A stretch of 64,000 nucleotides of DNA from Klebsormidium nitens. Taxonomy: Eukaryota > Plantae > Klebsormidiophyceae. Every line of letters starts with the position of its first letter. The stretch's first letter is position 1. Positions 2,637 through 31,843 of the stretch are shown piece by piece. Under the pieces are notes generated by a model. It did not search any database. It saw nothing but the letters and a program-made list of their open reading frames with translations, and was not told the origin of the DNA. The DNA lies in the NCBI GenBank assembly GCA_000708835.1, contig DF236967.1:248001-312000 (forward strand), in the 5' to 3' direction. Position numbers and translations under genes: made by a program.

Positions 2637-4443
2637 ATGAAACGTGATCCAATCATTACTTAATCAGGGTTCGGATCCTTAATTATGTGCCGTTTACCAA
2701 CTGAAAATCAGATCGATTGCGCATGCAATTGTTACATCATGCAGCTGACCTCATGCAGTGACATGTACCCATGTACTGGAAAACTTTGTAGTCCAAAGTT
2801 TCTGAAATTGTCGAACCATTTAATCATGCGATAATATGCACGGATGCTGGCACTGATCGTTGCCGGCCGGCCCGCCAAAAAGAGCTGTGCTCATGAATTC
2901 TGGCTCGAATTCGTGTGACTGTCACACATGCACTGGCACTCCATATGCCAGGCTGTGTATCCCGTTCGTGCACGGGCCTGGTCGCGGGATGTGATGAGTC
3001 GGACGTGAGCTCATGGCTAGTACATGGTAGACCGCCCAGGAGGGCGGCGGGGGCTTGCCTCTCTGTGGTGCGACTGGGCAGAATTTTAAAATTGCATTGT
3101 GTGGCGTAAAGCAATTTAAATGGCTTTATTCACAGAAGGTAGTGCGCTTGCGCGCGCACACGCCAAACTTAGTCCGTACACCACCTTGCGGTATGCACCC
3201 GAGGTGGTTGGGCAGTGCGTACCAGGTTTAGCCGGCACTCTTCTTTCCGGGCACCTTGATCAATTGTGAAACTCCTTCGCGTACAATACTGACGAAGTCC
3301 ATCGCAGATTAGGGTGATTTGATTTTTAAATTCGGCGTTATAAGCCCGGGGTACTGCACAGTGTCAAGTGCTAGGCAGTGGTGTAAATCACAACGTGGCC
3401 GCTCTTTCGACCTTGGCATGCAACGTGGCGGCTTTAGAGTAGGCCTCTTCGGAGAAATCGAGGTCAAACGTTACATCGTTACGGTATCTCGCGGCGGCAA
3501 CCTCGCGTCCGCGAACGATGCGTAGCATTAGATCTGCGCCGCCGCGCGGGGCAGTCTGGGCTTGGACGAAAACATGGTCTGGGACATTTGGGGGATTTTG
3601 CATACGTTTTCGCATCGAACTTCGACCAAGCGGAAACGGGACCAGACTGGGCGATGCTATCTTCCGCACAGAGCCACGTCGTACAGCGTCGCCCGAAGCG
3701 CGGTTTCATAGAATGCAAAAGCTTCCTATTTTACTTGGTAAAAGAGAGGCAAGCCAATATGGCTCTGATAGAGCACTGAGTGATCATGTGGCAGCTGGCA
3801 TGTAGCAATTCGTAGAGGCTTGCCGTGCACTATAATGATGCCACACGTTGGTGGCGCACGACGACGTCGGCGTTGATCCCTAGCCATGGGACAGACGCTA
3901 GGTAGCATGCACTGCTAGAGTCTACGACCTGAGCAGGCATGTATTAGTCACTGACGTTCAACCATTGCAATATAGTATAGCATTTTTAAGGCACATCTAA
4001 TCAATACTTTTGAAATTGTAGATCTCACCAGAAGCGAATCCGACTAAGGAGCAGTTATTTTATTTGTTGAACGATCGAGTTTCAAACGGTGTCCATATGA
4101 TCAGATTGGCCTCACTGAACGTAGGTTAGTACGGGTTCAGGAAACACTACGACGGAACACCTCAACGATACTTTACATAATGCCTGTTTGTTCTCATCTT
4201 CAAGGTTGATGAGCACTGTGTAAAGTTGGCCGCAAATCTAAGAGCAACTTAAATAAAATGCTTCGCAACGCATAAGTACTGCACTTCTGATGACAGGGTC
4301 AGGACGCAACGTCCTCCGGCTTTTCGACATTTTTCCGCTTCCGCTCTCTCACGACCTCTTCGCCGGACCCCTCTTCGGGACTGCGCTTAACATTTCCAAC
4401 AACTTGGGTTGTTGCCCCTTGACTGTAAGTCGCCAGTTGCTTG

Positions 4444-7400
4444 TCACGCTGCCTGGTTGGATCGCATGGAGGCCTGGCGGCGCTTGTAATGTCTCCAAGC
4501 AACCTGCAAACCACCATCACTCTTAAATTGTTTAAGGAGAAGGTTTCGTTGGCAACGGGTTTACCAGGATACGGCAGAATAAGCCGACGTTGCTCTAGCC
4601 GTTCTGTTTGTGTGCTTTACTGATCATGCTCAGAAGGGAGGAATTTTTTGTGCCACTTCCTACTGCTTTAGAGCGACAGACGGCGGCGGATGGCTCATCA
4701 AAATGAGCAGATACACGCAATCTGCGAAACCCCTGCTTTCTTGCGCTGTTCTTCAGATGGCTTGTCGTAATGCATCATTTTTTATCTTTATTTCGAGCGA
4801 ACAGCTTTCCTCCAACCTTCTGTGCTATGAAGTACCTGCACAAATGTCAGACTCCACTACAGAGCTCGTCTGAAGGACTCCGGATGGAAACCGTAGCGGA
4901 CACTCGCACTATCTGATTGAAAACCAACCAAGGTTCAAGGTCGACTCAAGACGTCCCCACAAAACCTCAAAACCGCCGACAATTCGCTGAAGCTTTCTTA
5001 ACCCTTAACGTATTCACGGACAGGAGCTCTTTTTCCGCCATGCCTTGGGCTTTCTTTTCCTGGCCAGAAGGAAGATAGGTCTCAATTTCATGTTGACTAA
5101 GGGCATCTGAACTAAGAAAAGCACACCGGGGACGAATAGGGATGGTTCGGGGGTTAGGGTGGGTACGGGTGCGGAGCGTGTCTCAGCTGGTTTATATGTC
5201 TGAATTTGCTTGTGCTGCCGAGCACTAATCGTAGTCAATACAAGCTTAGTCAACAAGAAACGAGAAGTATAGGAGGAACTAGAGCGGGGCGCACCTGGAT
5301 GGTGGCGGCGGCCTTCGTGCGCCAGTGGTGGCTGTGGTAGCGCAGCACGTTCTGCAGGTCCCGGCTGTGCAGCCGCCGGAAGTGCGTCGTCACGTACTTG
5401 AGCGCGTCCGCGTCCAGGTAAAACGCCTCCACGGGGCTCTGCGCAACGAGAGCGGGGGGGTGATTTAAGGACTTATGCCCGAAGAACGCTTCCAAAGGGG
5501 CTCTGAGCAACGAGAGCGGGGGGCAATTTAGAGAGTGATACCTAAAGCTTGAAGGCGAAACGGGCCTCTGCGCAACAAGTAGCGGGGTGCCATTCAGAGA
5601 GTTATACCCAAAGAAAAACTTCCACAGCGCTCTGGGCAAACGAGAGCGGGGGGCAATGTAGAGGGTTGGGGGTAATGTAGGAGTGCTCTCGAGGGGTATA
5701 CAAAAGCAGGATATCGGGATTGGTAATAGCCAAACCAGAATCCGTCAAGCCCAACACAAAGTTCGAAGCAACACAAAGCTTAGTGGTGAAACTTGAGGAG
5801 AAATTGACGTCAGGTATGACGTATGAGCTTGGGTAAGGCACAGCCGCCGGCGTCAAGTAAGTGGAACAGATGAAAATGTCAGAAGATGTTCTGCTTGACT
5901 GAAGATGAGAAGAGCGGTACCAAAAGAATCGAGGTTATTCCAAGTGGAACAGAGGCGAGAAGGAGGTCGCCACAAAGCTTTCGAGACAAGTGGAAAAAGT
6001 CTACTGGTCAAGAGAAGCTTCCACGACTTTGGGCCCAACGACAGGGGGTGCATTCCTGAGGGACGATGCGAAAATAAGTGAAATACACTCAGAAAGCCCA
6101 CAGCTCTTTTCGAGCAGTCTACTTCAGTCTCGTGAGAAGGTAAAACGACTCCGGGGGCTCTGCACGTTGCGACATCCGCAGGAAAGAAATGTTCCAAGAT
6201 CACAGTGGAACTGTCCGCCTGAAACCGCAAAGCCGGTTGTTGTCTGGCGTGCCGGCTCATTCTTCTGAAGGTCACCAAAAACAGACCAAAGTTTGTCCCT
6301 GGTAAAGAGGAATCGCGCTTGACTGGAGCCCAAGGATAGCCTCGCCCCGTACCTCAGCGGTGATGGTCCTGGTGGACTTGGGGAGCGCTTCCCGGGACCA
6401 GCTCCTCCCCGCCTAAAGCCCTAAAGCCCTAAAACCCTACAAGTGTAAACCCCTAAAACACTAAAACTCCGTACCTCGGCGGTGATGGTCCTGGTGGACT
6501 TGGGGAGCGCTTCCCGGGCCCGGGAGTCGAGGCACCACGACAGCAGCTCCTCCCCGGCGAAGTCCCCCGGGAGCAGCCGCAGCATGTTGAAGAACCCGGT
6601 GCGGTTCCCGTTCCTGACAAGCAAGTGCCGACGGCGTCAATACGGGCCAACGGGGACAGGCTCTCGAGTGAAACTCCGACGGACTTGGAATCTACCGCTT
6701 TCCAAACCTGCTTTCAACTAGAGAATGGCGCTCCGCAGCTGCCGAAGGCAGGGAGAAACATTGTCCCTCAGGGCTGGCAGTTTTAAGGAGCAGACACGAA
6801 CCCGTTTTGGCGTAGACGAGGCGTAGAGCACCGACGACGATGCTGCACAAGAGCCTTACAAGATTGCCCACCACCGAAGTCTCTGGAAAGGTGAGCGCAA
6901 ATCTCTCCCTGTGCAATCATAGACCGCGGGTCAAGCTGGCAAGCCTGTGCAATCATAGACCACGGGTCAAGCTGGCAAGGCGAGCTCGGAAAACTGAAAG
7001 TTCAAAGAGGCGCTGATTGGACGAAGGGGCTTCAATGGGGAGCTACGGCGATTCTAAAGCCTCCACCCCGAACAAGCTCGGACAACTTGACCTGATGACG
7101 GAAGACGAGTGGTCTCACGTGGTGATGCTGGAGAGTGTGCCCCGCACGACGAAGAGCATCCTGGTGACGGGATCCCCCTCGCGGTACACCTCGCTGCCCT
7201 TGATGTACAGCCGCGGCTTGAGCCGCTCGCACACCGCGTCCACCGCGTTGTCGTCCAGCGCCTTGAACAGCGTCACCTGCAGGGAGCGAAGCACAAAATC
7301 TCTCAGTCAGACTACCTATTGAGGCCGCGGAACCCACATACGATTGTGTCCATTGTTGCGCATTCTGGGCATCACTTCGGCTTTCGTGTCGATGAGACTT

Positions 7401-10400
7401 GCAATACAGACTACAAAATCCAAGCGGCATGACAAGCCCCGAGCACGATCCGCATCAGAAGGCGAGAAAGTTCAGAACCCAAATTGTCCTGATCACATTC
7501 TCTGGTCAACTTTCCGAAACAGGAAAGTGTCCTGCTCCAACTCTCCCTTCGAATAGTTTCCAATTCCAAACGCATCTTCTTCAGTGAGACTTCCCCACAT
7601 ACCTTGCGCACGAGTTCGATGCACAGGTGTCGCTTGATGTCCCGCCTCAAATCCTCCGGCAGCTGTTCCAAAATCCCTTGCTCGTCCACTCCACTGGTCG
7701 CCTCCCACGTGTACCGGTCGTGCTTCCTGACCCTCTTCCGCAGATCCCCGGGCAGTTGCCGGGCTCGCATCCACAGCTCGGTGTCGCGCCCCTGGAGGCG
7801 CATCTCGTCCAAGCGCGCGCTCAGCGACTGGAGGAACGTCTGGATGTTGCCCACGAGGAGCGCGAAGAGGACCAGCCCCACGATCGCGACCACGATGCAC
7901 AGGATGTTCTCGCCCGGGAAGTTGCTCGTGTTCAGGTTGTTGCCGAACGAGCTGTCGAGAGAGAAGGGCGACGAGTGTCAGCTTTGAGCGGATTGCGAAG
8001 AGGTGCTCGTATTAAGGTTCGCTCATGTTCAGGTTGTTGCCGAACGAGCTGCCGCCGGGGACGAGGAATGGTTCAGGGTTTTCAAGATCTTGGGGTTTTC
8101 AGTGTAAGCTGGGAGGGGTAGAGTCAAGTTGGGCGCAAGGTGGAGAGGGCGGACACCTTTAGGCACGGGACAAGACATCGACTCTCGGTTATGCATTACA
8201 TTGTGCCAGTTGGCGAGCGATGGTGCAGCACTGGAATGTCGAGAGTAGACGCAGCCCGCAAGTATGCACGACAAGAATGCCATACGAGATTTTACACAAG
8301 CTACTGGGACGTCCCGTTCCAAGCGGAAGTTTCAAAAGCGGAGCGAATTCTGGTTTCAGAGTTTTAAGCGCCGCCGCAATGATCAGGCACAGGCTTCGAT
8401 GGCGACTCAATACAAAGGACAAAGTATTCAGTAACTAGACGTATTGCAATCCGGGCTTGTCGAAGCGCTCACCAGATCTGCTGCAGGCCCCACCACAGGC
8501 TGTATAGATAGTTCTGCCAGCCGCGCTCGGACTGGATCAGCAGGATCAGCGGCGTGTAGATCCCGTAGTCGAAGGTCCCGATCGCACCGAACGCGATCGC
8601 GGGGTTGTTGCAGTTTTCCTGGATGACTGCAACCACGTTTGGATTGATCGGTGTGGCGCCGCCGCAGGAAAAGTGGTCCGGGCAGACGTCCGTGCCGTTG
8701 CAAGCGAAGCTCCGCCAGCACGAGTCGATGCGCTCCAGGCCGAATACGTACCAAACGGACCCCGTCACCTGGGGTTGGAAACGAAACCGTGCTGAGGGCC
8801 AATTTATATTCAAACCCATGAGAATTGCATATTTTGAACATTAACCATCTTGTGTTAAGAGGATGATTCATGTGGGATAGAATCCGATGCCGTAGGAGCG
8901 CTGCTTTTTCAATCGCGTCCCTCGCACTTTACCCGTGCGGATGCCATATTAGACGCTGTGTGAAGCTGGGGTACAGACGTTCTGTTTAAAACGTGTTTTT
9001 GTCTGCAGCGTCCACCCAAAAGAGCATCTCCAAGTGGCGAGCTACATGGCTCGAAGGCACGGACGACCGAAACTCATCTATCTAAAGTAAGTCAGGAGAC
9101 GAAGGATGGAGGAGCGGAAGCGTAGGCTCACGTGGGCGGCCAGCAAAAACATGGCGAGGTTGATGACGAAGCCGGACCAGGCGGTTTCGAAGACCACGCC
9201 TTCGGGTTTGATGACGGCCGCCTGCACCGGCAGCACCTGGATGATGCGCGGGATGTACTGGATGGCCACGATCAGCCGCAAGTAGTTCTGCAGGGCCAGA
9301 GAGATTGGGTTAGCGGCAGGGGTTAACAGTTTTGCAGGGCCAGAGACATCGGGTTAGCGGCAGGGGTTATATAATCTCTACTCTAACGTGGCCGAGTGCT
9401 CCTCTCTCGTGTTGTGTTGGAAATTTGCCATTCACACTGGTCATATCTGCTTCGACTCGAAAACGGACAAACGGTGAGCACGAAGGGTTAACCCTACTTG
9501 GAGCCGGTTTGCTGAACATTTTCAGCCAGTGAATTGGCAAACGAGACTGGGAAGGTCAGGAAAAGGTTTTCCCTACAATCCTTCGAGTTGCAGCCGCCAC
9601 TACCAAACCCTGTATCCTCGAAACGGTGCGCGACTTTGACATACGACTGCCACCAGAAAGCGGATGGGAAGACGCAGAGACGACTGCCTTACCGCGTTGT
9701 TTCCAGTACTTGCAGACCCATCGTTCCAATGCGCCAGGATTACCCACAGTACGATCTGCGGCACAGGACAAAGAGAAGATGCTTAGCCGACTGTCGACAG
9801 CAAGGAAAAAAAGTGCTTGATGAAGAAAATACAACCACCTGACGACGTGGGTTGAAAGGCAGGCCCCCTGTTGTTTCGAGCCCTGACAGTAGTTCAGGTG
9901 ATTCCGTTATTACATTCTCGCCAGCAAGATGTCAGGCCTTACAATACACTCTTTTCCACAGTACCAGGTCGGCAAAGCTGCCGCTTCTATAGCCCCTCCT
10001 GTACACCTTGCGAAATTGAAAGAACTAACCGCCACCGACGCTAGTTACCTAACCATGCTTAGCCCCTGGCCAAAAAAGAACCCCCTCACCTGCGGCAGCG
10101 GCAGCATGGCAAAGACGTCGAGCAGGAGGCTGGTTTTGAGGTATCGCCAGGCGATCTTCTTGGGGTCCCTGACCAACTCGCCCCGGCCAAAGACGAGGCT
10201 CGGAGCATACGCCGTCCTGAACTTGATGATGATGTACAGGAGGTACATGAGATCCGTGAGGCTGCGCAGCAAGGTGATGGTCACGCCGAAGTTCCAGTCG
10301 AAGTCGACGCACGGCTGGGCAATGTCGATGACCGGGAGGAAGAAGAAGAGAGGGTCCAGGAACGCGGCCGCCTGGAAATGGTGTACAGTAGGGAAGGTCA

Positions 10401-11169
10401 TTATCACGGTTTGAAAGAGTTAAGGACAGCTTTCAGCGCACTTTCATATAGCGACGTTGTTCCAACATAAGCTTTGTATGCTTTTTTGGCACAATCAGAA
10501 GCGGCGCTGGTCTAGAAGCGAATGTTGGCATTAGAGGGTGCGTCAGGCAGAAGTGCGGGCAAGGGCAAGGGGCAGAAAGCTGTGCGAGCACTCGCAGTAC
10601 TCAAAGAATGATACAAAGAGACGTTCAGGGTGGGATTGCAGTGAATTTCGAACGGGGCGACTACACGCGGCCGCACTGTTGCTCTAAAAGGGCACGATGG
10701 TAATATCTACGGAAACAGAGTTACGAAGAACGAAGGATCTCGGAGAGGAGGAACTTGTAGAAAGAAAAGGGGACCACATCAAGAGATTGTGGTCACAGAA
10801 GGTCTTATCCAACTCTGCCACTAACATTCAACGATTCTTGAAGTTAACAGCTATGTGGTTATTATACAAAACCTTCAGTCTCATGAGCAAGAATCTGCAG
10901 GAGCAATCAGAAGAAGGACTTGACTACAGTCTGAGTCTGCGGCAATCTACGGTCCCCAGCCTAACCAACAATGAAGACGTCTTCAGAGGCGAGCGAATAA
11001 CCTCACCAGGCAGCTGCAGACAAACACCTTGCTCCACTGGCGGATGAAGTAACTCCCTGGGTCAAAGATGTACGCGCCCTTGTATTCTCGGATGGACATG
11101 ATGCGAGAGGAGATGGATCCCCTCGTTCTGCGCAACCATGATCGCTCCTCCTCCGCAACTTGGTCAACA
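4444..11169 (-). CDS. CNGC: Plant-type cyclic nucleotide-gated channel; exons 11007-11169, 10090-10371, 9693-9755, 9132-9287, 8473-8768, 7603-7951, 7119-7276, 6475-6613, 5295-5438, 4444-4503; start codon unresolved (upstream of 11169)
   Basis: Exon phases are consistent. Motifs: IFDPGSYFIRQWSKVF, FLDPLFFFLPVI, YLYSLWWGLQQI-CSFGNNLNTS pore, FALLVGNIQTFLQSL S6, phosphate-binding cassette GDFAGEELLSWCL...LPKSTRT, hinge VEAF, CaM-binding FRRLHSRDLQNVLRYHSHHWRT, IQ motif IQVAWRHYKRR. Confidence 0.93.
5420..5655 (-). repeat. Four ~65-bp degenerate tandem units, each a copy of a CNGC splice acceptor plus exon start
   Basis: Recurring sense-strand CCCCCGCTCTCGTTGCGCAG|AGCCCCGTGGA variants. Confidence 0.85.
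6347..6530 (-). repeat. Duplicated CNGC exon end plus donor, separated by a telomere-like tract (6412-6467)
   Basis: CCGTACCTC(A/G)GCGGTGATGGTCCTGGTGGACTTGGGGAGCGCTTCCCGGG occurs twice, with CCTAAAGCCCTAAAGCCCTAAAACCCTA between. Confidence 0.9.
6909..6979. repeat. Two-copy ~36-bp tandem repeat in a CNGC intron
   Basis: CTGTGCAATCATAGACC(G/A)CGGGTCAAGCTGGCAAG x2. Confidence 0.9.
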
Positions 11170-13061
11170 CTGAGCAAGCAAGGGGACGTATCTTGTCAAG
11201 CGGACTTTCTTTGGCGCAAGATCTTTGGTTAGGAGTAGAGGGATCCCTCTAAGAGCCTCACGAGACCTTGGGGCTAACTGCGCTTCTGCATCCTCTATAC
11301 CCATACGTTTCACAGTCGTCCATTCAACCTAAAGGTGAGGATGTCAGAGCAGCGAGGGGCTCCACATTGTTGGCGCCGGCACCGGCAAACACTCCTCTTG
11401 ACACTAAGCTTACGCAGCCAGTAAGCAGCGGCTGAATCCGAAGCATCAGTGCGAGCACTGCCAACCTTAGTGTATATCGCCCAAGAGGACAACTCTCACC
11501 AAGAGGAGACTTCTGCTTCTGACAAAAGTGCGTCAAGTGACCGGCTACGCCTGACGTCATGCTTGGTGACTCAGTGCCACACAGTTCAGGCATTTTGCTG
11601 GAGAGTACACTCAATTGAAAGGAACATAAGGTTTCCCAGCAGATGTACTTTTGGACGCCTGTAATCACAATACCACGTCGATAAGAAGGACCTTGATCTT
11701 CATAGGCAGAGAGGCAAAAACTCATGTGGTGGCAACCAGTTTGGGTGTTACCTCAGAGAAGGTTCATCATAAAGATGTCCTCCGTTAGCCATCCTTGCTT
11801 CCTGATGTGGCAGCTTCTCGACATTGAAGGGCAGGAATGGGTTCCATTCGCGAAGCCTGCGAGTGTAGAGATCACCATTCGTGCCGAAACATGGTTGTCC
11901 CTGATGCTGATGTACTCCAAAAGAGAAGCGAACTGTTTGTTGGATGATCAAAGGCTCCTTCCAGTATAATCAACAATGTATGTATGCTTCTTTTATAAGG
12001 CCGTAGCGTGAGCCATGGACCTGCAATGAAAACCCTTCTCCTGGGGCTAGAGAGCTGTTGCAACAGTTTTTACTAGAAGTTTACTTCGCCTTGACTTTGG
12101 ATAGTCTAGCTAAGCAGCACTACAATGTCCCCATTTCACACTGATGTGATACATTTCATAGGTCTTCCCAGGGCTGTTAATCCAACAAACTTCACGGGAA
12201 GCTTTTCTTCCCATGCTGCAATGAGCCCAGGAGGGCACAAAAGAAGTAGAGTATGCTTCAGTGTTTAAGCAGCGGCGCTCACCTTTCTTCGGCACTTGAA
12301 CTCCCCTCCCTTTGCAGAGGGGCTATCTTGACCTCTTCCATGACGATTTTGACCCTTCAAGCACCAAGAATCTGCTCGAGGTCAGAGACAGAATCCACCA
12401 GAGTGGACCATGATGAAGCTAACGCCTCACGCCGCGAAGGCACTCATGTTCACACATGTATGTTGACCTTCCCATTGCAACTTGCAGCTCTCGGAGTCGA
12501 GGCTTCAACTTCAAGCTCACGTCTAGGTACCGCGGTATGTGGGGTAACAACGTGGTTAGTGAGTAACCGACTCATTGCCAATGCCAAACGGCCACATACG
12601 GTCCCGGCATTGGTCTGGATATGACTCATCTAATACCCACCTCAACGTCATTTCCAAATTCTCAGAGCCCTCATCGCCGATTTAGGAAGATCTGGGCACA
12701 TGAGGTTTCACATATGTGGTCAGTGTGGTTCCGGTTATAAAAGTGTTAGGGACTGAAGTCTTAACCCTCACTATCGGGAGGAAAGAATCGTAATGAGCTG
12801 GAAAACAGGATGGTCCCCCAGCTATTATACCGCCACCTCACACTGCTATGCACTACGTAGTGCTGTACTATACAACTTACAAGCTTTCAAGTGAGAGCCA
12901 CCAACAAATCTGGATGAGCTTGACAGCATTGCAATTTGCAGCAGCACTGAGGCGTTGAACAGGAGGGCTAAGCCGCGTTCTGGGTCCAGCACAAAGCACG
13001 TGATCACCTCTATTTCCAAAGCTTTAAGAAGGACTCAAAAACTACACCTCGAAGTGAAGCA

Positions 13062-16000
13062 ATGTCGGAGAGATCATGGGTGCATAAGGTCTTCGTTCCC
13101 AACGCCTCTTCCGGCACCCAGCATTACAGTTCTGGCAGGGTTCATGAAGTGTCTTGCCCTTGTCCAAATTGCCCCAACAGGCGCGCACTGGAGAGTCCCT
13201 TTGATTCAAGGCTAGCGGATGTGAGGCTTCAGCTGGAAAAGGTTGGTGCACGGACTGACTGATTCCCAACTTGCTTTTCGATATACTTGAGACTTTGGTT
13301 GATGGTCGGAAGTTTGAATGTGCGGTGATGATGCTCTGCCAGCATCTACCAGCTCCTGGCACTTTCCTCCCACACATTGACTTACACAGTGCATAATGAG
13401 CATGTGTCGTGCTTCTAGGTTGTGCTTCTGAAGCAACACAAAAGTTCCTGCCTTTACTCCAGTATCAGAAAGGTAGCCCTTTTGCTCCAAATCTAGCAAA
13501 ATAAAACATACATACAACGCATACTCTAAGCTGGTAGCAGGTTGTTTCTTCCTCATCTGAAATGCAATCGTCACCATCACACAAGATCTGAGCGGTTGAC
13601 TGTTGAAGTGAATTCCGAGTTGGCCTCCAGTCCCTTAAACCGTTTACTGTGTGGCTGCAGTTGGTGAAGAGCATGCCTGCAAGGCTTTTGAAGCCTGGCA
13701 GTCAGGGCCCGTCCCTCGAGAAATGCCTCAAAGGCATGGTGGCGCTAGGTTGCAGGGTCGAGAAGGACAAGGCCCTCATGAAGGCCCATGCTCTGGCAAA
13801 GTTCAACTCCGCCCGGCCCATCCTTGCTGCAGGGCTCTATTCGGTGTGCCAAGATTTCCAAGGTGGGTGTCTGTATGATGTAAAGCACCTCTTGTGCAAA
13901 TGACTCTGCAACAATCTACGACTCTCTTATTTTGCAGGCCTCTTTGTTTGTCTTAAAGAGGATCTGGTGGACATTGGGTTTACAGTTACATTTTGTGGTG
14001 GTGCAGCGCAAGTTGCCGGTTGCCTTTACGCATATGTGAATGACGGGGATTTGAGGCGGGGGTTCCCCGCTTACTGGGAGCCGTTTGAGCGTTTCATCGA
14101 GCTCTTGGACTCCGACAGTTGGGAGGTATGTTTCTGAAATAGTGGAGAGACCGAGTAGCTTGCGCTTGCATGGCTACAATCAAGTCTCGTTCCCTTGAAT
14201 CAATCACAGACGAATCTTCTCAAACAATCAAACATTGCACTCAGGTTCAGAGAACTTCCTTGAAAGACCCAAGTCAGTAGTATCCTGAACAGGGTTTGAT
14301 CAGCTGATGAAGGGATACCTGAAGTTTCCAAAATCGAAGATTCCAAATGAAACTCTTGTTTCTATNNNNNNNNNNNNNNNNNNNNNNNNNNNNNNNNNNN
14401 NNNNNNNNNNNNNNNNNNNNNNNNNNNNNNNNNNNNNNNNNNNNNNNNNNNNNNNNNNNNNNNNNNNNNNNNNNNNNNNNNNNNNNNNNNNNNNNNNNNN
14501 NNNNNNNNNNNNNNNNNNNNNNNNNNNNNNNNNNNNNNNNNNNNNNNNNNNNNNNNNNNNNNNNNNNNNNNNNNNNNNNNNNNNNNNNNNNNNNNNNNNN
14601 NNNNNNNNNNNNNNNNNNNNNNNNNNNNNNNNNNNNNNNNNNNNNNNNNNNNNNNNNNNNNNNNNNNNNNNNNNNNNNNNNNNNNNNNNNNNNNNNNNNN
14701 NNNNNNNNNNNNNNNNNNNNNNNNNNNNNNNNNNNNNNNNNNNNNNNNNNNNNNNNNNNNNNNNNNNNNNNNNNNNNNNNNNNNNNNNNNNNNNNNNNNN
14801 NNNNNNNNNNNNNNNNNNNNNNNNNNNNNNNNNNNNNNNNNNNNNNNNNNNNNNNNNNNNNNNNNNNNNAACTCTTGTTTCTATCACAGGTTGTAGGTCA
14901 GGCTGCGCTGGGTATTGCGGCGCTGTGTCACGCCCCATTCGCGTGTCCTGGCTCCCCTCAGCTCTTTCACCAACTCGAGTTCTTCAAGCTAGGGGCGGTT
15001 GACAAAATGATAGCCCTCATCTCTGACCCGCAAACCAAACGCTGGTCCAGGTATGCTGTCGCTGTCTGCACATGGTTCTGAGATCTCTGCGTTCGTTGAG
15101 TGCACTGCATCTTATCTAAGAATGCTTTCTTCGCTCGTGTGTGCAGCAACTTGCTTGCGATCTCTAGCCCTCAGTTTAGGACTTTTTGTGCGTCAATTCG
15201 AAGTTCCTTTGACATGTTTGCTGAAACCCTGAAGCCGCTGCTTGATACAGTAGGATTTCACTCAAATTCCACAACTTCTCCTGTCAGGTCCTACACACGG
15301 GAGGACGCGCAGATGGAGCTAGCCTACGCCCTGACCCCTTTCCTCGAAAATAGTGACAATCTCATCGGACCAGAGGCCCCTCAAAAAGTGCTTGGGGCGC
15401 CCGGGCTCATCCCCCGGTTGGTCGAGCTAGCGTCCTGCTCTGAGAGAGAAGGGGAGGTTCAGCGGGTGGCTCTACAGTGCCTAGTCTTAACAGCGGAACT
15501 GAGTCCCCAAGTCGCGGAGGTGGTGCTTCGGGCCGGAGCGAAAAAAGTGGCAGAGAAAGCGTTGAAGCAGCCCTTTGCCGGGCCAAAGAACGTGAGTGGA
15601 GCAGAACTCTCGTTGCCGGCTGCCTTTGAATGGCGAAAGAGCGATTTCTGTTGGGTTGAGAACCTACTGTCTGCACCTAAACGGTGATTCCAAATGCAGG
15701 CTGACCCTCTGAACCATGATAAGAGTTCAGATGCGGACTTGGGTATGGTTGATGATGGCAGCGTCTGGCTTGACCAATTCAAGCCCTTTGACATGCCCTT
15801 GGGTCCGATGTTTGCAGGATGGAGATCAGCAATCGAAGCAGCGAGCGGCCACGTTGTTAAGGATTCTAAAGGACGTAGAGATTGCAGCGCCGGAAGAACA
15901 AGTGAGTCAAAGTAGTTCAGGTTTTACACTTCATCCTGCTCATCTTCCTCGTTTGTTTTTGTGATTGATGGAATCTTGGAAAATATATATGGAGTTTCGA

Positions 16001-23384: not shown

Positions 23385-25423
23385 GCTGCAGACAAGCTGC
23401 CCACGAGCTGCGGTCGTTATCATAAGCGGTGAGGGCACCGTCGAAGTCGTTTCGCGTGGATCTGACTGAGCCGTTGACACTTTCAGAAGCGGGTCCCTCT
23501 AGCGTTATTAGCGACGCGTCGGCGCATATGCATATGCTCCGGGGTTGATGAGCATTGGGCACCGGACGTGTTCCAATCCCTGTAGCGGTTGACTTAGGAG
23601 CAGGATAGTAGACCACCGCCTTCGCTTACATGCCCCTCCTCCACGTCTGACTGCCGCCCTGTTTGTTTGATCCTAGTCTGGTCTCGCTTCCTTGAAGACT
23701 GTCTCCTCAAAACACGAAATACTTGTTCCGAGAGACCGCCCACGTGGCAGCTCTTCTGCGCTTCTCACTGTAGTTGTCCACTCCCTCCTTCTCATCTAGC
23801 GCTGTTTCCAAAAGCTTCTTTCGCGACTGTACCCAGCTTCTTTCGTCGCAGGCTCGGTGTGACGAGCGACCCTGTATCAGCCCACAGTGCGCTAAGTTTG
23901 CTTGGGCCGCCCGAGCAATTGCAGCCAACATGCCGTCCAGGCAGGTGACATCGGCGCCCAGATCGCGGCCGCAAGTACAGCCGTTGGAGACCGTGACATC
24001 AAACAAGGATATCGCGACAGCTCACACTGCACATGCTTGTGCTCCGCGGCTGCTGCTTGCACTGGGCGTCGACAAAGCGAGCGACTGCTGCGGGTGAAAA
24101 CAGTCCGTGCGAGTGACCGCCAAACAGCGCTCTTGAAAGGGGCAAACGAAGTTAGGGGCGGATTTTTGCGGAGGTTCAAGGATAACCAAGGTAACCAGTT
24201 ACGTTTGGAGTTTTCGCTGTCCGGGCAAGAGCGCATAGGATGGATGAACTGAGCCGGGGGTGAAAGGAAGCTATCCGAGAAAGAGTGCCATCTGATCCAG
24301 ACGAGCGGCTGAGAACCCACGGATTCTCGATTTGTGGGCTTAGAAGAGTTGCACGACATCCAATGAAAGGACAGAGTCGACGCTACGTCCAGTAACCCTG
24401 TTAAGTTATCTCTTCTAATGGTAACTTAAGCGGTTCGAGAAAGCAGACGGGCACCACGGGAATCGACTTTCTACGGTAACCTGTTGCATGGTAGACATTT
24501 GACCTCAAGCCCAGCCGTGCAGTAAAGGGCCGGCATTCGGCCTCACCATAGATGCATGTGCAAACCGTAGATGTATGCATATTTCGAGGCATTCGGCCTG
24601 CCGCAGACTTCTAAGAGAAACATCAGTACGCAGTCGCCATCGTTTTGATCATCGATCTGGATGCAGTATATTCGCGAATCAGTGGGGCTATGCTACGCAG
24701 TGACATAGTGCAATGTACCTTACGCTCAGGCTTGCCGGCAATTCTCTTGGGCTGGCAGTGCGGCCGCCGCAGTGCGGCGCAGTGCGGCGCGCCTCCAATT
24801 AAGATAAGTCAGAGTAAATCAATCAAGTGTTTGGGCTGCGCCGAGGGCGTGGGCTCACAAACTTGATGAGTGCTGCCCGCAGATCATGAAATGATGTATT
24901 TATGACAGTCTATAGGCGGCTAGCTTCGCATGTGTATCGTACACAAGTTGGCCATAGTATGGCCTACTTGCAAAAACCCAGATGCACATGTGCTTCAATC
25001 TCGGGAACTTTCACCGTCTTAGCAACCAAGATGTTGCACGGCCAGTCTGCACTTCATCAAGTGCGGATTCCACGGAAGCGACGACATACCATGCTTTTAA
25101 CCTGATTTGTGGGAACTATCGAACACTTCGTCGATCGACAACAACATCTTGGGTGCGAGGTTCAAGGGGCCCGAGCTAAACTGTTGACGGTCGGACCATT
25201 GAAGCAAGTCGGATCGTATCGATTAGCACACTCAACCGTGGACTTGCACTGCATCATGAAACTGGACCGGCTGAGTTGCTCTCATAGGAGCCAAAGAAAA
25301 GGTTAGAAGAAAGATTGATGAATCATGGTGATCAAAAATGCTATTGCCTATTTGTCAAACCATTGCCAATCGTGCAACCTCTCAATGTGCTGATTAGAAG
25401 ATGATTGTCTAGTCTACAACTTC

Positions 25424-27320
25424 TCACTTTTTCGCCACTGCCGGCGCATTCGATATTGCCGATTGCTTTAGCTGGTAAGCGGGCGTGAAAAACTTGGGCT
25501 GGCTCAAGTACGTCGCAGTCAAACCACTAAATGTTGCGGCACCAATCAGCATGTACATGACAACAATCTGCAGCTGAACTGCCTCCAGGGGAGACGCCCC
25601 GCCCATGATCAGCCCGGTCATGGCCCCCGGGAGAGAAACCAGACCAATCGTTTTAGCGTTGTCAATTACGGGGCTCATGCCAGTGCCCAGGGACCGCCGC
25701 AGCTGCACCAGACTCGCCTGTCGGGGGGTGGCACCGAGGGCAAGGGCGGCTTCCACCTGCAGAGCAAGAACTGCGTCGAAGAACTGGAGGGCGATGTACT
25801 GATGCAGACGTTCCGCCGTTTCGGAAAGGCGGTCCTGGACTTTGTGGTCGCAATCGATCAGAACCTCTGTGAGTGCTCGCAGGTTCGACGGAGGAGACAC
25901 GGGAGTTTCGACGTCAGCCAGCCAGACTCGCCTGCTTGTCTGCTTTCTTTCCGGTGAATCTCCGGATCACAGAAAAGCAGATCTTTGAACGCACCCGCCA
26001 GACGGCCGCAACATATCCTAGACCCATTCGCTCAATCAGACAACTCAACGACGTCCGGTTCATGCAAGCATCACTTTGAAACGTTAATCTTCCGATGCAT
26101 TTTTTCCCAACCCCTGAGGCCATTGTCATCAAACAGGTCTCTGCCAGGCCGGCATCAAAAGTCATCCAGAACCACTCACAACGTTAACCTCTCACTCCCA
26201 CAACAATCTGTTACCCTGATTGCTTTCTTCCTGGGTTGCTTACCTCGAGGTGCTGCAGGCGGATGTCCTCCCTCAGGCGCTTCATGGTGACGCCCGTGAC
26301 CGTCATGGCATTCCCGGTGATCATTCCGGCAATGGGGATGATGTAGCGTGGCTCGAAGGGGAACACGCGCAGCAGAACCAGCGCGGTCGTGGTGATGCTG
26401 GTGCCAACTAGGATGGCGAGAGTCGCCACGTGGTGGCTGCCAGGGACGGCCTTGGCGCGCTGGCCTGCCGTGTAACCGGCAATCAGGATCTGTGTGAGAG
26501 ATCCGCTGACTGTGAGGCTGCTGGATCCGTAAGGAAAAGCACAAACCGTAACCCGTGGTTCCAGTCGAGTCATGTTGAACGGACAAGGCCGATTCATGGA
26601 AGTGAGTGCGGATCGACCAAAGGTTGTGGATTTCTGATGCACAATGACTTCTAGGTTCGTAAAGGAAGGGAAAACCAAAGGATTATGAGGTGCCTGGCAA
26701 ACAGAGTGGGCTACAGAAAGCGGAGGGAGAAGCAGGACCGGAATGTATTTAAAATATTACAAACCTTAGAATGTGAAGGCTCGATAAAAGGCCCTTTGAA
26801 CATCATTCATTAAAAGTCCCCTGTGGTGGCGAGCACGTGACCAAAATCAAGGCATCGTTCAGCATTCCGGTACTTTTCAAGGGCTTTTGATTTCCGGGGC
26901 TTGGAACCTGCACAGACTCCACCGAGAAACTTTCCAGAACATTCCAGGCCCATCATCATGCCTCAATTTCAAAGAATAAGCTCAACGATTCCTCACCATG
27001 ATACTGATAGACAGCAGGATGAGCGCAAAGCCCTTCTGCGCAAACACGAACTGCAGCGCGAACCCGATGCCGATCAGCTGCACGAACGAGCGCACCACCG
27101 CCACAAGCATCTCCTTCTCCAGTCCCACGCCCTCCCGCCAGGAAATCAGCATCGCCACGAAGACCAGGGCCATCGCGGCAACAGGACGCAGCAACCCGCG
27201 AACAAAATCGTCTTGTGCATCTGTGACCACTGTACTTAGGGCTTCGGCGACAGAGGGGGCTGGGGAGGGGGGGAACAGGTATGGATTGCCCCCGGCAAAC
27301 GCCGGCAGATGGTTCGCCAT
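25424..27320 (-). CDS. ALS3: ALS3/STAR2-type membrane subunit of a bacterial-type ABC transporter (UPF0014/FetB family), 300 aa; exons 26997-27320, 26244-26489, 25424-25756
   Basis: Three phase-0 exons. Motifs GLEKEMLVAVVRSFVQLIGIGFALQFVF, FPFEPRYIIPIAGMITGNAM, VEAALALGATPRQA, DNAKTIGLVSLPGAMTGLIMGGASPLEAVQLQIVV. Confidence 0.95.
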
Positions 27321-27513
27321 GGCCGCTTCTTGTGGCGAAGCTTTTCAACTTTGCGGGGGTGCTAAGCTTGTAACTGCTTGCGCTAAGAACTTCTACTCGG
27401 AAACGTTGAAGAGATACTATATGCAGCAGTGGGGCCGGTCAACAATGGTGAGAACAAGGATACTTCTCTCCAATGAATTATCGATGGCTTCCGGACCGTC
27501 TCGCTTTTCCAGT

Positions 27514-28973
27514 CTACTCGTCCCCTGACTCGAGCGTCCCCGCCAGAAACTGCTGCGAAAGCGGGTGCTGCGGGTTGAGCAGCTCCGCAGGCGTGCCCCG
27601 CTCCACGATCTTTCCCTTCACCAGCAGACATACATCGTCCGCAATTCTCCTGATCTGCTCCACGCTGTGCGAGACGAGTACCACCGTTATCCCCAACTCA
27701 ATACGCAATTTGAGCACCGTCTCCTCCACCTTGCGCGTCGCAGCGGGGTCGAGAGCGGACGTCGGTTCGTCCAAGAGAAGGCAGTCTGGGGAATTGGCAA
27801 GAGTGCGAGCAAGGGAGACGCGTTGTGCCTGGCCGCCTGAGAGCTCAAGCGCCTGCTTTGAGGCAATCCCTGGCTCGAGGCTGGCTTTCTGGAGAAGGGC
27901 GTCAACTTCGTCGGGGGAGAGCTTCTTCCCCTGGAGTGAAGGGCCGTAGCGCACGTTGTCTGCGACAGTTCCTGAGAAAAAGATGGGACACTGTTAGGAA
28001 GTTTGAAAATGTGTAGTCTTCTCCAACGACAGTGTTGGAAAAACAAGGTTTCAACCGTGCAAACCCTTTGCGGTTGGCCAACTTTTGAAAAGGTGCGGCA
28101 CTTGATTGGTTGATGAAGCTGAAAGTTGCGCCAGCTCTGACCGGCATCTGATCGTCATATGTGCAAGCTGGAAAATCTACAGAAAATCAGCACTCTTCTC
28201 AAAGAAGATAGTATACCATGAGCGGACTAACTCTGCTGGTCTTCTAGCGCATCCTTTTCAGTTGAGCTGGACTAGATTGGACTCTCCAAACAAGATCAGT
28301 TTCTCTCACAACATGCATGAGGTGACGCCTTTCATTGCAACCGCTTGGCGTCAATTAAAACTTTGTCACAAGAAGCATGCTTTCACCCCTTGGTCGAAGA
28401 AGGACAGCCAGTGCATGCATCACATGCACCACCGCCATTCCAGCTGCTAAATGAGGGGCACAGAAGACCAAGCTAAGCCAATGCTCGCAAGACAGCTGTA
28501 TAGCGCTCACCGTCGAAGAGCGCTGCGGTCTGAAAGAGCATGCCCACCCGGCGCCTCAGCTTGACAACGTCCAGGGTGGTGATGTCCACCCCGTCTAGTT
28601 GCACCGCCCCCTTCTCAGGCTCCCAGAGCCTATTTAAAGCCCTCAGCACCGTCGACTTCCCGCTCCCACTGGGCCCGATCAACCCGAGAATTTGCCCCTT
28701 CTGCACCTCAAAGCTCACCCCGTCTAGAATCTTCTGCCCAGACTCTGCCACAAGGTTGAGATTCCTGACCTGAATCCTTGCGCCGGTGTAGCGCTCCGCG
28801 CTGCTGTCTATGCGGTCTAGCTGCACGGACTTGAGCAGGCCCTGGCTCTCCAGGTCAAGGTCGGACTCGGGGCTGTGAGGGACCACCATTGGCGTGCGCG
28901 CATGGCGTCGCAGCCGCCCCCTCCCTCTCAATCGGTGCCACACCGTCTGTACCAGCGCCCTCAGGAACCTCAT
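27514..28973 (-). CDS. STAR1: STAR1/ABCI17-type stand-alone ABC ATPase subunit (FetA-like), 306 aa from the first ATG; exons 28511-28973, 27514-27971
   Basis: Walker [29 protein letters not shown], signature [19 protein letters not shown], Walker [13 protein letters not shown]-loop VSHS. One phase-1 intron restores ALFD|[11 protein letters not shown]. Confidence 0.93.
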
Positions 28974-31843
28974 GATATGGTCCGGCTTTGTTCAGATCTG
29001 CGCTAGCAAACGCGCGCATTTGACCACAGGGTTTTCAGATTAGGGTTCGTGCCTTGATACTAATAGAGTGAGTTTTGGAGAGGCTTCTTCACGGTGATGA
29101 TTGACAGCTGGCGCTGAGCTGAGCTGAAGCTGCCAGAATCCATTGCTTTCCAAGCCTCAAGAATTCCCACATTGCCCCCACATTGCAGTGGTGCAATGTC
29201 CCAGTTGTGTAAGGTCCTATTCAGAGCCAGGAAAAAGAGCTCATGCCCAAGAGATGAAGTGCCAGCTGCGGGGCCGCCATAACAGCAAGCACAGTGGGGC
29301 TCCTTACTGTGCGCGGTTGCGGTGACTTTTTAGAAAGAATGGTTCTCGCAGGGGCATCCAAGGGGCCTTTGAGGTGGTCTCAAGTGGAGTTGCAACGAGG
29401 GGGACGCTAGCAGAGGTTGGTCGCTCTTACTCTGGCCGCCTCCTTGTCCCCCGATGGTGGTGTCATCTGAGACTGAAAAGGTAAACTCTACTTTGAAAGC
29501 AATGTCACTTGGTGGTCACCTCATATAATGGACGTGCATCTTTTGCACTGGTCGACCAGAAAGTTTCAGAGAGCTTGAGAGAAATATTCTATGGTTGAGT
29601 TTTCTTCATTCGTGCATCATCCGGCTCTGCATTGAGATTGACGCCCCTCTGGCCAGGGACCTTCCTTTGTTTCTGCACATCAGGTTCTCCTGCAAGCTTG
29701 GCCCTGTAAGTCTTGAAACCTGGCTACCTATTGGCAGCCAGCATTATGGTGCACTATTTGACTAAAGTAAATGTTCTATTCAAGGTTTGTCCAACCTATT
29801 GTGGCTTTGCAACCACCACCTTTTTCCATGAGCACAACTCAATAGCATCATCCTTGTTCAGTCTAGAACGTCCTGCCTTACAGTTTTCCCAAGATTGCGG
29901 GATGTCTTGCAATGCCTTGGCCAGGCTTTGGTCTCTCATGAAGGGACTGAGTCCATCTTAGTCTCTACGGTCTTTGGAGAACAGCAAAAATGGTTTCAGA
30001 GGTCGTAAGACATCTTTGCCCCATTGTTGTGACAGTTAGTGAAAATTGCGCGGGCCTGCTCCCCTGACGTGTCAACTCGGGTGTGCCGGTAGGCGTCCGC
30101 ACTCATTACAACAGTATCTTCCTATGTCCTTTGGTAAGAACAGTCAGCCCTCCTTCAGACGCTGGAATCTGTGATACAAGATGGTTGTGCATTACAGCTA
30201 CGTTGGCTGACGCCATGGTCGAGGATGCTTCAGGCTGCTTTCTAGCCAGTAGAATGTTGATATTGATCCGTATACAATTGGTCGCAAACCAAAGAGGAGG
30301 CTCGTGGGGCAAACAGTGTTATAGGCTGTACCAAGGAGGGCGCCAGGCTTGGGCATGAAGATCGAAAGGGCAGGAGCCACATGTCCCTGGCGCATGCAGT
30401 CAGTATTTGCAGATCCCAGATGTCAAGTCCTTTCTGGATTTGGCGTCGTCAAGACAAGGTTTCATCCAAAAACTTTGCGATTGAAGTCAGTGTATGATTG
30501 CACCCGCTCACCCGACTGCATCATTGCTTGACATTGAAGCACTGGACGAAAAGATCGAGTTCTTGTTTGAGAGGAGTTGTCTCAAATAAACGTTGAGGAA
30601 AGCAAAGTTGTTTTTAAATTCTAAAAATAGCACCTCTCTTTCCGGCACTCATGTGTGCAAATGCTACTATCATTTTCTCACAAGCGTTGCTCTTTAGAAC
30701 GATCGACTCTTTTACAATACTTTCAGTAGATCGTCAAATCCACTTCCCATGGAGTGTTTGTGTTGGATTCGAAGACGAGCATGACACACTTTTGAAGAAT
30801 GCATCGACGACGCTCGAGCGCGCGTGCTCGGCTGGTTGGTGTCTACGTAGGAAGCACCACCTCTCAGGTCCTTGGGTGGTGAGTGAAAGGCGCAGCCTGT
30901 TTTTACTTGCACTACCCTTGAGGATCATGTAATTCACGACCGTACGCGAAGAGCTTGTCCGTGGCTGATTTCAAGGCAATCTTTTGTCGAAGAAGAGCTA
31001 GAGAGTTCCGTGCCTGTACATGCAGGTGGAAGGGGCTGCAGCGGGCCAGTTACATGGAGGAGGAACTATGATATAAGAGCGCAATACAACGAAGGTGCGC
31101 CTTGCAGACTGCTTGGTGCACTTGCAATAAGCTCGCTTTCTGATTATTCGAATTGACGGTTCGGCCATGCCAAAAGGCAGGGTTGCTGAAAGCGTAAGGA
31201 AGAACTTGTTGAGAACACTTGAGTCCTCTTGCCCATGGTCTCAGCATGCCATTGAATCTTGTATGTCCCCCGGTATGTCCGGGTGGGGGTTTTGTTGCAA
31301 AGGCTTTGGCAGAGCTGGGTGCTTCCAACCGTTAGGAGAACTCGTCTTTTGGGCCATCAACTTATCAATGATATCAATCTCGACTCGAAAAGAGATGTAG
31401 AGATGCACCAGCCGTACACCGATCAGCATACCATTTTTTGAGAACGTACTCCATGAGTATGGAATGCTGTCAATGTGGATGCAGGATTGGCTTTCACCGC
31501 AAGGACTATGAATGTATTTGTAATAACACACGACAGAAGTTGCTAGCTCAACCCGCACATAGGTGGCACAAAATGGCGTGATGGCATGCCAGCTGCAAGG
31601 CTTGAACGAGACTCTCGTATACCTACCGGATGCGTATTGTCAGCAAATCTCTCGATTGAACATGGAAGATCATTGACATCATGCATGATATCATAATTCG
31701 TAGGGGCCAGGGCGGTCCGAGTTGTTGACGTGGGGTTGACGTGCCATGCGAACAAGCCTGTGGCACTGGGGCAAGCCTGCTTCTTCGGACTGTTCGGATG
31801 CCAGCCTGCTGCCACAGTGCACCTGCAATAATATGGCTACATG

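Follow-up and report, generated by a model that had tools for sequence, protein, structure and literature searches.

Introduction

STAR1 and ALS3 (STAR2) make up a well-studied plant transporter that acts in aluminium tolerance and local phosphate sensing, and their genes are unlinked in rice and Arabidopsis. The bacterial origin of this transporter has been proposed previously and is undocumented at the level of gene order. Orthologues of ALS3 and STAR1 have not been reported in chlorophytes, and horizontal gene transfer (HGT) into the streptophyte ancestor has been suggested (PMC11528361). Chlorophytes have bicistronic loci decoded by leaky scanning, in which the two open reading frames (ORFs) are separated by a median of 183 nucleotides (nt), the ATG observed/expected ratio ahead of ORF2 is 0.43-0.49, the Kozak context of ORF1 is weak, the 5' untranslated region (UTR) is short, and the median length of ORF1 is 291-357 nt (PMC11291117); the same class of loci was described by Gallaher et al. 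2021 (PMC7896298). Here, we analysed a 64,000-nt stretch of the genome of Klebsormidium nitens (assembly GCA_000708835.1, contig DF236967.1, positions 248,001 to 312,000; hereafter, the window), in which a gene for a STAR1/ABCI17-type ATP-binding cassette (ABC) ATPase and a gene for an ALS3/STAR2-type permease stand next to each other in the order of bacterial fetA-fetB operons. We did not find a report of STAR1-ALS3 adjacency in the literature.

The reading that we favour, and that we consider fairly probable, is that the pair is a relic of a bacterial operon, still in the fetA-fetB-type arrangement, that is expressed from a single dicistronic mRNA with the help of leaky scanning.

Structure of the Locus

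The two genes are located on the minus strand head to tail: the ATPase gene, consisting of two exons, is followed by the gene for a permease of the UPF0014 family, consisting of three exons. The likely coding part of ATPase exon 1 (28511-28888; Pfam ABC_tran positions 1-71, E 1.9e-18) contains Walker A (GPSGSGKST) and the Q-loop (MLFQ). It is separated by a 539-nt phase 1 intron, inserted between LFDG and TVADNV (27972-28510; GT..AG joint 27970/28510 in 4/4 runs), from exon 2 (27514-27971; Pfam ABC_tran positions 82-137), which contains the signature LSGGQ, Walker B and the H-loop (VSHS), lacks any in-frame Met, and ends with the TAG stop at 27516-27514. All these motifs of an ABC nucleotide-binding domain, from Walker A to the H-loop, are readable in the translations.

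The ATPase stop and the permease ATG are separated by a 193-nt spacer devoid of ATG (27321-27513). The permease ATG, at 27320, stands in an apparently strong context (gcggccATGgcg). Permease exon 1 (26997-27320; Pfam UPF0014 positions 5-66, E 6e-13), exon 2 (26244-26489; positions 67-150, E 2e-16; flanking joints 26489/26997 and 25754/26242 in four runs) and exon 3 with the stop codon (25424-25756; positions 154-242, E 5e-29) together span the UPF0014 (PF03649) profile contiguously, from position 5 to 242 of 242. They are followed by a short 3' UTR (25313-25423), delimited approximately by the ends of RNA contigs at 25313-25396. Among the NCBIfam models, TIGR00245 FetB was the sole match for each permease exon, with scores under the whole-protein cutoff, as expected for exon pieces, and the ATPase exons scored higher with PstB- and ECF-type models than with E. 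coli FetA.

The first-pass annotation of this locus had placed the ATPase stop at 27514 and the permease start at 27320 of the same strand, 193 nt apart, and these coordinates were confirmed, with Pfam matches and RNA joints in agreement. It had also placed the ATPase start at the ATG 28973-28971, which gives a longer exon 1 (28973-28511). This start should probably be moved: the ATPase is likely to start at the ATG 28889-28887, because the starts in two related loci (L019 and L001, see below) align with Met29 of the long model (28889, context gccaATGgtg), with no in-frame ATG upstream in either, and because RNA contigs end at 28939, 28921 and 28915 in 3/4 runs, i.e., 3' of the ATG 28973. The ATPase would then have 278 residues, encoded by an ORF of 837 nt (921 nt if counted from 28973), and the probable 5' leader (28889-28973), with the formerly assigned start inside it, would be only a few tens of bases long. 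An out-of-frame ATG, 14 nt 5' of the likely ATPase start (28903-28901), is retained in L019 and opens a 28-codon ORF overlapping that start; possibly it is a conserved regulatory upstream ORF (uORF).

Could the two ORFs be expressed as one fused protein, through read-through of the ATPase stop or a splice that removes it? A spliced fusion of the same two families, in the reverse order, does exist in the same genome (L106, see below). However, the ORFs of the window are in different frames (193 mod 3 = 1), a TGA in the permease frame is located 9 codons upstream of the permease ATG, and no joint skipping the ATPase stop was found among the RNA contigs of four runs. We rejected such a fusion as extremely improbable, and the first-pass conclusion that an in-frame stop excludes simple read-through stands.

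Spliced RNA Contigs Bridge the Spacer

Four runs, each from a different study (X1, X3, X11 and X15; the run type was guessed), supplied Logan contigs, which were placed on the 25300-29200 region of the window. All three introns appeared as GT..AG joints at the exact predicted positions in 4/4 runs; we consider the contigs RNA-derived because the introns are spliced out of them at these sites. Unspliced contigs across the introns were 10-50 times shallower. One contig of X15 (contig 15, 2,040 nt) extended from 28939 to 25367, comprising both ORFs with 3/3 introns removed and crossing the spacer, and contigs of X1, X3 and X11 led from permease exon 1 through the spacer to ATPase exon 2 and on to ATPase exon 1. 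The spacer was bridged by spliced RNA contigs in all four runs, and neither a dip in depth nor a contig break was seen within it in any of them. Both ORFs are likely co-transcribed, and we infer that they are carried by a single RNA molecule. A search of the literature for long-read RNA of Klebsormidium returned nothing relevant.

Transcription at a lower depth was also seen 5' of the ATPase gene, in 28998-29200 and onward to ~29937, as separate contigs in X3, X11 and X15 and joined to the ATPase contig in X1. A long ORF is not evident between 28998 and ~29937, and this region may serve as a long alternative leader or represent a separate non-coding unit nearby.

ATG Depletion Ahead of the Permease Start

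We compared the number of ATG triplets with that expected from base composition, with orthologues and a paralogue as controls. Between the starts of the ATPase and the permease, the window contains 3 ATG in 1,027 nt, which is 0.23 of the expected number. The corresponding ratios at three other loci with linked genes (see below) were 0.15 (L019), 0.09 (L001) and 0.25 (L107), whereas for the permease ORFs of the same four loci they were 1.5-1.9. In the homologous ATPase core, the ratio was 0.12-0.33 in the linked loci, as compared with 0.94 in Closterium and 0.74 in Calypogeia, where the genes are unlinked, 0.57-1.16 in six bacterial operons, and 0.81 in the reverse-order paralogue L106 of the same genome. 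The ATPase encoded in the window has one internal Met in 278 residues. Three or fewer ATG occur in merely 2 of the 1,260 1-kb genomic windows of the 64-kb stretch. A shuffle of codon order that keeps codon composition did not detect the depletion; this null retains the Met-poor set of codons and so misses the effect.

The two start codons differ in their surroundings as well. The start of ORF1 (gccaATGg) has C at -3, which is conserved in three loci, and that of ORF2 (gccATGg) has G at both -3 and +4; the contexts were compared without a species-specific Kozak consensus.

The depletion of ATG argues, on evolutionary grounds and independently of the contigs, that ribosomes would scan from 5' of the ATPase ORF to the permease AUG. 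It likewise argues that the co-transcription would be functional. Thus, the first-pass suggestion of a possible dicistronic transcript gains in substance from the bridging spliced contigs and from the scarcity of ATG ahead of the permease, with the single molecule itself being deduced from them.

Orthology and Bacterial Affinity of the Two Genes

Searches and trees were made exon by exon, with the spliced models unjoined, and each tree was based on a single exon region of 80-150 columns. The best single-domain matches of ATPase exon 2 beyond the Klebsormidium clade, in an exhaustive search, were those of Calypogeia, Closterium, Linum (ABCI17), Miscanthus (STAR1) and Psilotum. Word searches returned plant ALS3 and STAR1, and also bacterial proteins at equal or slightly higher identity, the named ones being from Chloroflexi or Anaerolineae. 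The position of the ATPase intron (LFDG/TVADNV) is common to Closterium (L023) and Calypogeia (L025), and that of the second permease intron is shared by Calypogeia (L011).

In the tree of the ATPase exon 2 region, streptophytes grouped together (94/95), Klebsormidium being the sister of all others, within a starred bacterial clade containing L020, Chloroflexia L014 and L015, and L022, L036, L037 and L046. Eukaryotes were likewise one clade in the trees of permease exon 2 (99/98*) and exon 3 (100/97*) regions, and in both of these Klebsormidium was again sister to the remaining, embryophyte-like sequences (100/99* for exon 3); L020 (P0122) was sister to the eukaryotes (98/95*), followed by the L022 group and Anaerolineae. 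The nearest bacteria were identical in the trees of both genes: L020, L022, L036, L037, L046 and Chloroflexia/Anaerolineae. Judged by best matches, trees and intron positions, the ATPase and the permease are orthologues of streptophyte STAR1 and ALS3, respectively, as the first-pass annotation had named them. Because of the trees and the shared intron positions, both genes are best regarded as inherited vertically among streptophytes, with bacterial affinities that agree with each other.

The ATPase is up to 65% and permease exon 3 up to 75% identical to bacterial proteins (vs. L022), as if the pair could come from bacterial contamination or from a very recent independent bacterial insertion. 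To this we assign a virtually negligible probability, and we rejected it on account of the introns and their shared positions: three spliceosomal introns are removed in RNA, intron positions are common to Closterium and the liverwort, and the sequences group with streptophytes in both trees. An independent recent HGT into Klebsormidium, considered since L022 is slightly more identical than the plant orthologues, was ruled out as well by the trees, the shared introns and the eukaryote-specific residues (DNAKT and LIMGGASP vs. bacterial DNTKT and MILAGASP).

The bacterial relatives are themselves arranged in pairs. In ~30 bacterial loci with both genes complete, the ATPase gene lies directly upstream of the permease gene, with the exception of L039 and L040, which have only weak ABC matches ~2 kb upstream. 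ATPase exon 2 is 57-64% identical to the ATPases of bacterial FetB-type operons. The top bacterial matches of the ATPase and of the permease are on contigs of equal sizes (12986, 13500, 22994, 4608 and 5008 nt), which suggests that they share contigs. A scan of genome contigs gave 7 confirmed loci. The first-pass annotation had identified the bacterial relatives as fetA-fetB, transcribed in the order ATPase-then-permease; the order held in complete bacterial loci, and the nearest ATPases do lie beside FetB-type permeases, whereas the name FetA itself fared worse, given the higher NCBIfam scores of PstB- and ECF-type models than of E. coli FetA.

One of the closest bacterial operons (L020, 4256-9350) adjoins feoC-feoB-feoA and a gene for a DtxR-type iron-dependent repressor. 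This context fits an iron-export role of the donor-type system.

Linkage in Other Genomes

The adjacency was found in other genomes. The five exons recur in L019 (a Logan genomic contig), where they are 81-90% identical in nucleotide sequence to those of the window and are accompanied by a 170-nt spacer with no ATG; the spacers of both loci lie within one continuous alignment of 81% identity. L001, a JGI metagenome contig of 73-85% identity, has the same gene order with a spacer of 649 nt, inflated by ~95-nt tandem repeats. More distant is L107 (Logan contig of SRR24319163, 1009-3455), which was obtained in the exhaustive ATPase search and in which the ATPase gene is followed by a 155-nt purine-rich spacer and by the permease gene. 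Its ATPase intron is at another site (after GKSTILR), and its permease is encoded by a single ORF without introns, with an N-terminal extension of ~100 aa; the contig may represent a transcript from which one intron was not removed. The L107 permease has eukaryote-type residues and groups with embryophyte-like sequences, not with Klebsormidium (100/99*). An approximately unbiased (AU) test rejected the grouping of L107 with the Klebsormidium clade (p = 0.028, 102 columns, with a long-branch caveat). Linkage is thus seen on both sides of the deepest sampled split, that between the Klebsormidium clade and the embryophyte side represented by L107.

The repeats in the L001 spacer derive from the ATPase 3' end. 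In L001 and L106, the terminal 65-87 nt of ATPase exon 1 are repeated in tandem, and these copies fill the ATPase intron. The repeats of both kinds occupy 4333-5064 and 7140-7530 in L001 and 10788-11114 in L106. Exon-end minisatellites seem to recur at the ATPase gene.

Elsewhere the genes are apart. In Closterium, the permease gene was not found within 10 kb of STAR1; in the liverwort Calypogeia fissa, STAR1 and ALS3 are on different scaffolds; and in several bryophyte- or angiosperm-like metagenome contigs the ATPase gene was not found within 1.7-8 kb upstream of the permease gene.

A second pair of these genes is present in K. nitens itself (GCA_000708835.1, DF237259.1, 8240-12137; L106), and it has the reverse order: permease exons (8240-8500, 8927-9172 and 9722-10027) are followed by ATPase exons (10379-10702 and 11691-12137). 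A splice joins the tail of the permease (MSDGPAAS) to the ATPase, resulting in one ORF; the annotation of the 'ABC transporter' P0398 begins within the permease, and the reading frame is shifted where the last permease exon starts. Both L106 genes fall within the Klebsormidium clade, and the two trees agree on where in it they belong, which indicates that the pair was duplicated as a unit. The simplest route to L106 would be a tandem duplication of the ATPase-permease unit followed by the loss of the outer copies; by this route, the ATPase-permease adjacency is the older state.

These data bear on whether the adjacency is old or regained. The genes could have been acquired unlinked or become so early, and selection for co-expression could later have rejoined them in Klebsormidium and, as a separate event, in the L107 lineage. 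That they are unlinked in Closterium, the liverwort, rice and Arabidopsis, and that the rearranged L106 copy shows them to be mobile, would agree with such a history. However, it would have had to recreate the order, orientation and tight spacing that almost every complete bacterial locus in our sample displays as an operon, and to do so on either side of the deepest sampled split, with L107 and Klebsormidium separated by the AU test, for two genes that trace to the same bacterial group and that were duplicated as a unit in L106. We consider secondary adjacency decidedly unlikely. The adjacency is real, conserved and non-random, and we infer that it is ancestral. An operon relic is the most economical reading: this gene order is also that of the bacterial outgroup and has been kept in two separate streptophyte lineages, both genes have congruent bacterial affinities, and their introns are shared with unlinked orthologues.

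The first-pass annotation had interpreted the pair as an operon relic from the original bacterial acquisition, and this is supported by the congruent, not incongruent, origins of both genes in phylogenies with bacteria, by the bacterial gene order and by the linkage in L019, L001 and L107. As to microsynteny, the picture is divided between these three loci and the unlinked genes of Closterium, Calypogeia and the bryophyte-like contigs.

Surroundings of the Pair

A Pfam scan of ten long ORFs flanking the pair gave no match. The window also has a block of low GC content (14000-16000; 0.38 vs. ~0.53 elsewhere) with several overlapping long ORFs on both strands, which looks like a repeat or a foreign element. 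On its minus strand, a 621-nt stop-free stretch (14277-14897) has no ATG.

Discussion

The history and the expression of the locus can be pictured as follows. A streptophyte ancestor would have taken up the operon as one piece of DNA from a Chloroflexota-like soil bacterium, and both genes would then have gained introns. Their adjacency would have been kept in at least two streptophyte lineages, including that of Klebsormidium, and lost in Closterium and embryophytes. In Klebsormidium, one promoter would drive the synthesis of one capped, spliced, dicistronic mRNA, in which a short 5' leader would precede the ATPase ORF, followed after the 193-nt spacer by that of the permease. The ATPase would be translated from an AUG in a weak context, and a fraction of 40S subunits would pass this AUG and the few remaining ones by leaky scanning, to initiate at the strong-context AUG of the permease. 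Re-initiation after the short overlapping uORF possibly assists permease translation.

Several of our observations weigh against this picture. Contigs cannot prove that both ORFs are on one molecule, as two transcripts overlapping by at least 31 nt would assemble alike, and that neighbouring units can merge is seen in contig 6 of X1, which also continues for ~960 nt on the 5' side of the ATPase gene. Permease contigs vary from ~0.55 (X3) to ~1.6 (X1) times the depth of ATPase contigs, which fits, as weak evidence, an additional independent transcript of the permease. At 837 nt, ORF1 is 2-3 times longer than a typical ORF1 of algal bicistronic loci. Moreover, 4-5 AUGs remain before that of the permease (28903, 28889, 28541, 27635 and 27631), so that leaky scanning alone would yield little permease; the ATPase and permease subunits are expected in equal amounts. 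As to the origin of the pair, the trees rest on short single exons and that of the ATPase leaves the bacterial sister subgroup unresolved, L107 is on a long branch, and the linkage survey covered the Klebsormidium clade (3 genomes), L107, Closterium, Calypogeia and bryophyte-like contigs, with Chlorokybus, Mesostigma, Chara and Coleochaete outside the sample.

The points concerning RNA would be accounted for by two separate overlapping mRNAs. In this case, the ATPase transcript would end in the spacer or past it, the promoter of the permease gene would lie in ATPase exon 2 or in the spacer, the bridging contigs would be assembly merges, and the adjacency would be that of a compact gene pair. 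The merging of upstream sequence in contig 6, the roughly threefold difference in the permease/ATPase depth ratio between runs, and a break in an X3 contig at 27237-27267 are all compatible with it, and the UTRs are short here, the 3' UTR of the permease being ~30-110 nt. Nevertheless, the spacer is too small for a conventional promoter plus two UTRs, and it shows no dip or break in four runs. Moreover, two mRNAs would leave unexplained why ATG was purged in four diverged linked loci and not in the unlinked orthologues or the reverse-order paralogue. We regard two overlapping mRNAs as unlikely. With the dicistronic mRNA as the preferred source of both proteins, the amount of permease may depend in part on an additional mRNA with the permease ORF only, or on re-initiation downstream of the short uORF.

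If the window locus and L107 are indeed relics, both subunits arrived together as one operon. The locus would then be a living intermediate between a bacterial operon and eukaryotic genes, with introns gained, the spacer widened, and translation solved by the removal of AUG. The range of leaky-scanning bicistrons would grow beyond chlorophytes to include streptophyte algae and an upstream ORF of unusual length, which would make the locus a natural test case for the reach of scanning. The furthest-going form of this proposal is that the operon has survived since early streptophytes as a working dicistronic nuclear mRNA, with an ATPase ORF of ~280 codons purged of AUG for ~1 kb of scanning, and that this linked, co-translated state was ancestral to land-plant STAR1/ALS3 and broken up later. 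We advance it tentatively, as an attractive possibility that falls a little short of being probable.

Comparison with Known Systems

The closest prokaryotic counterparts are bacterial FetA-FetB (YbbL-YbbM) operons, especially those of Chloroflexota and of metagenomes (L009, L014, L015, L020, L022, L036 and L037), in which the genes have the same order on one strand; the ATPases are 50-65% and the permeases 45-75% identical per exon to those of the alga. In these operons, the genes overlap or are 22-25 nt apart and have no introns, whereas the algal pair has a 193-nt spacer, three introns and eukaryotic rules of translation. Also, the L020 operon is located beside feoABC and an iron repressor, and the algal locus is without such a context.

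Land-plant STAR1/ABCI17 and ALS3/STAR2 are orthologous to the algal genes by best matches, trees and shared introns, and the algal proteins presumably form the same two-subunit transporter. In land plants the two genes are unlinked, whereas in the alga they are adjacent and apparently co-transcribed; the function of the algal pair is assigned by orthology only. The L106 paralogue comprises the same two families, but in the order permease-then-ATPase, spliced into one ORF and apparently frame-broken, with an ATPase that is not depleted of ATG (0.81).

In its expression, the locus resembles chlorophyte bicistrons (Gallaher et al. 2021, PMC7896298; Duenas et al. 2024, PMC11291117). The inter-ORF distance of 193 nt is close to the median of 183 nt in Chlamydomonas, and common to both are the depletion of ATG before ORF2, the short apparent leader and the different frames of the two ORFs; the apparently weak start of ORF1 and strong start of ORF2 may be a further resemblance. 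Unlike them, the pair is from a streptophyte host, its ORF1 has ~840 nt as compared with medians of ~300-360 nt, and its products are two subunits of one complex that comes from a bacterial operon; the evidence for it comes from contigs and sequence.

In its origin, the locus resembles the enterobactin-type siderophore operon of Wickerhamiella/Starmerella yeasts (Kominek et al., bioRxiv 10.1101/399394), where a bacterial operon was acquired, its adjacency was kept, and there are signs of multi-gene transcripts. The yeast operon is younger, encodes a multi-gene biosynthetic pathway, and belongs to fungi. In contrast to it, the algal pair consists of two genes, is apparently of early-streptophyte age, and has gained introns and a translational adaptation in the form of the ATG purge.

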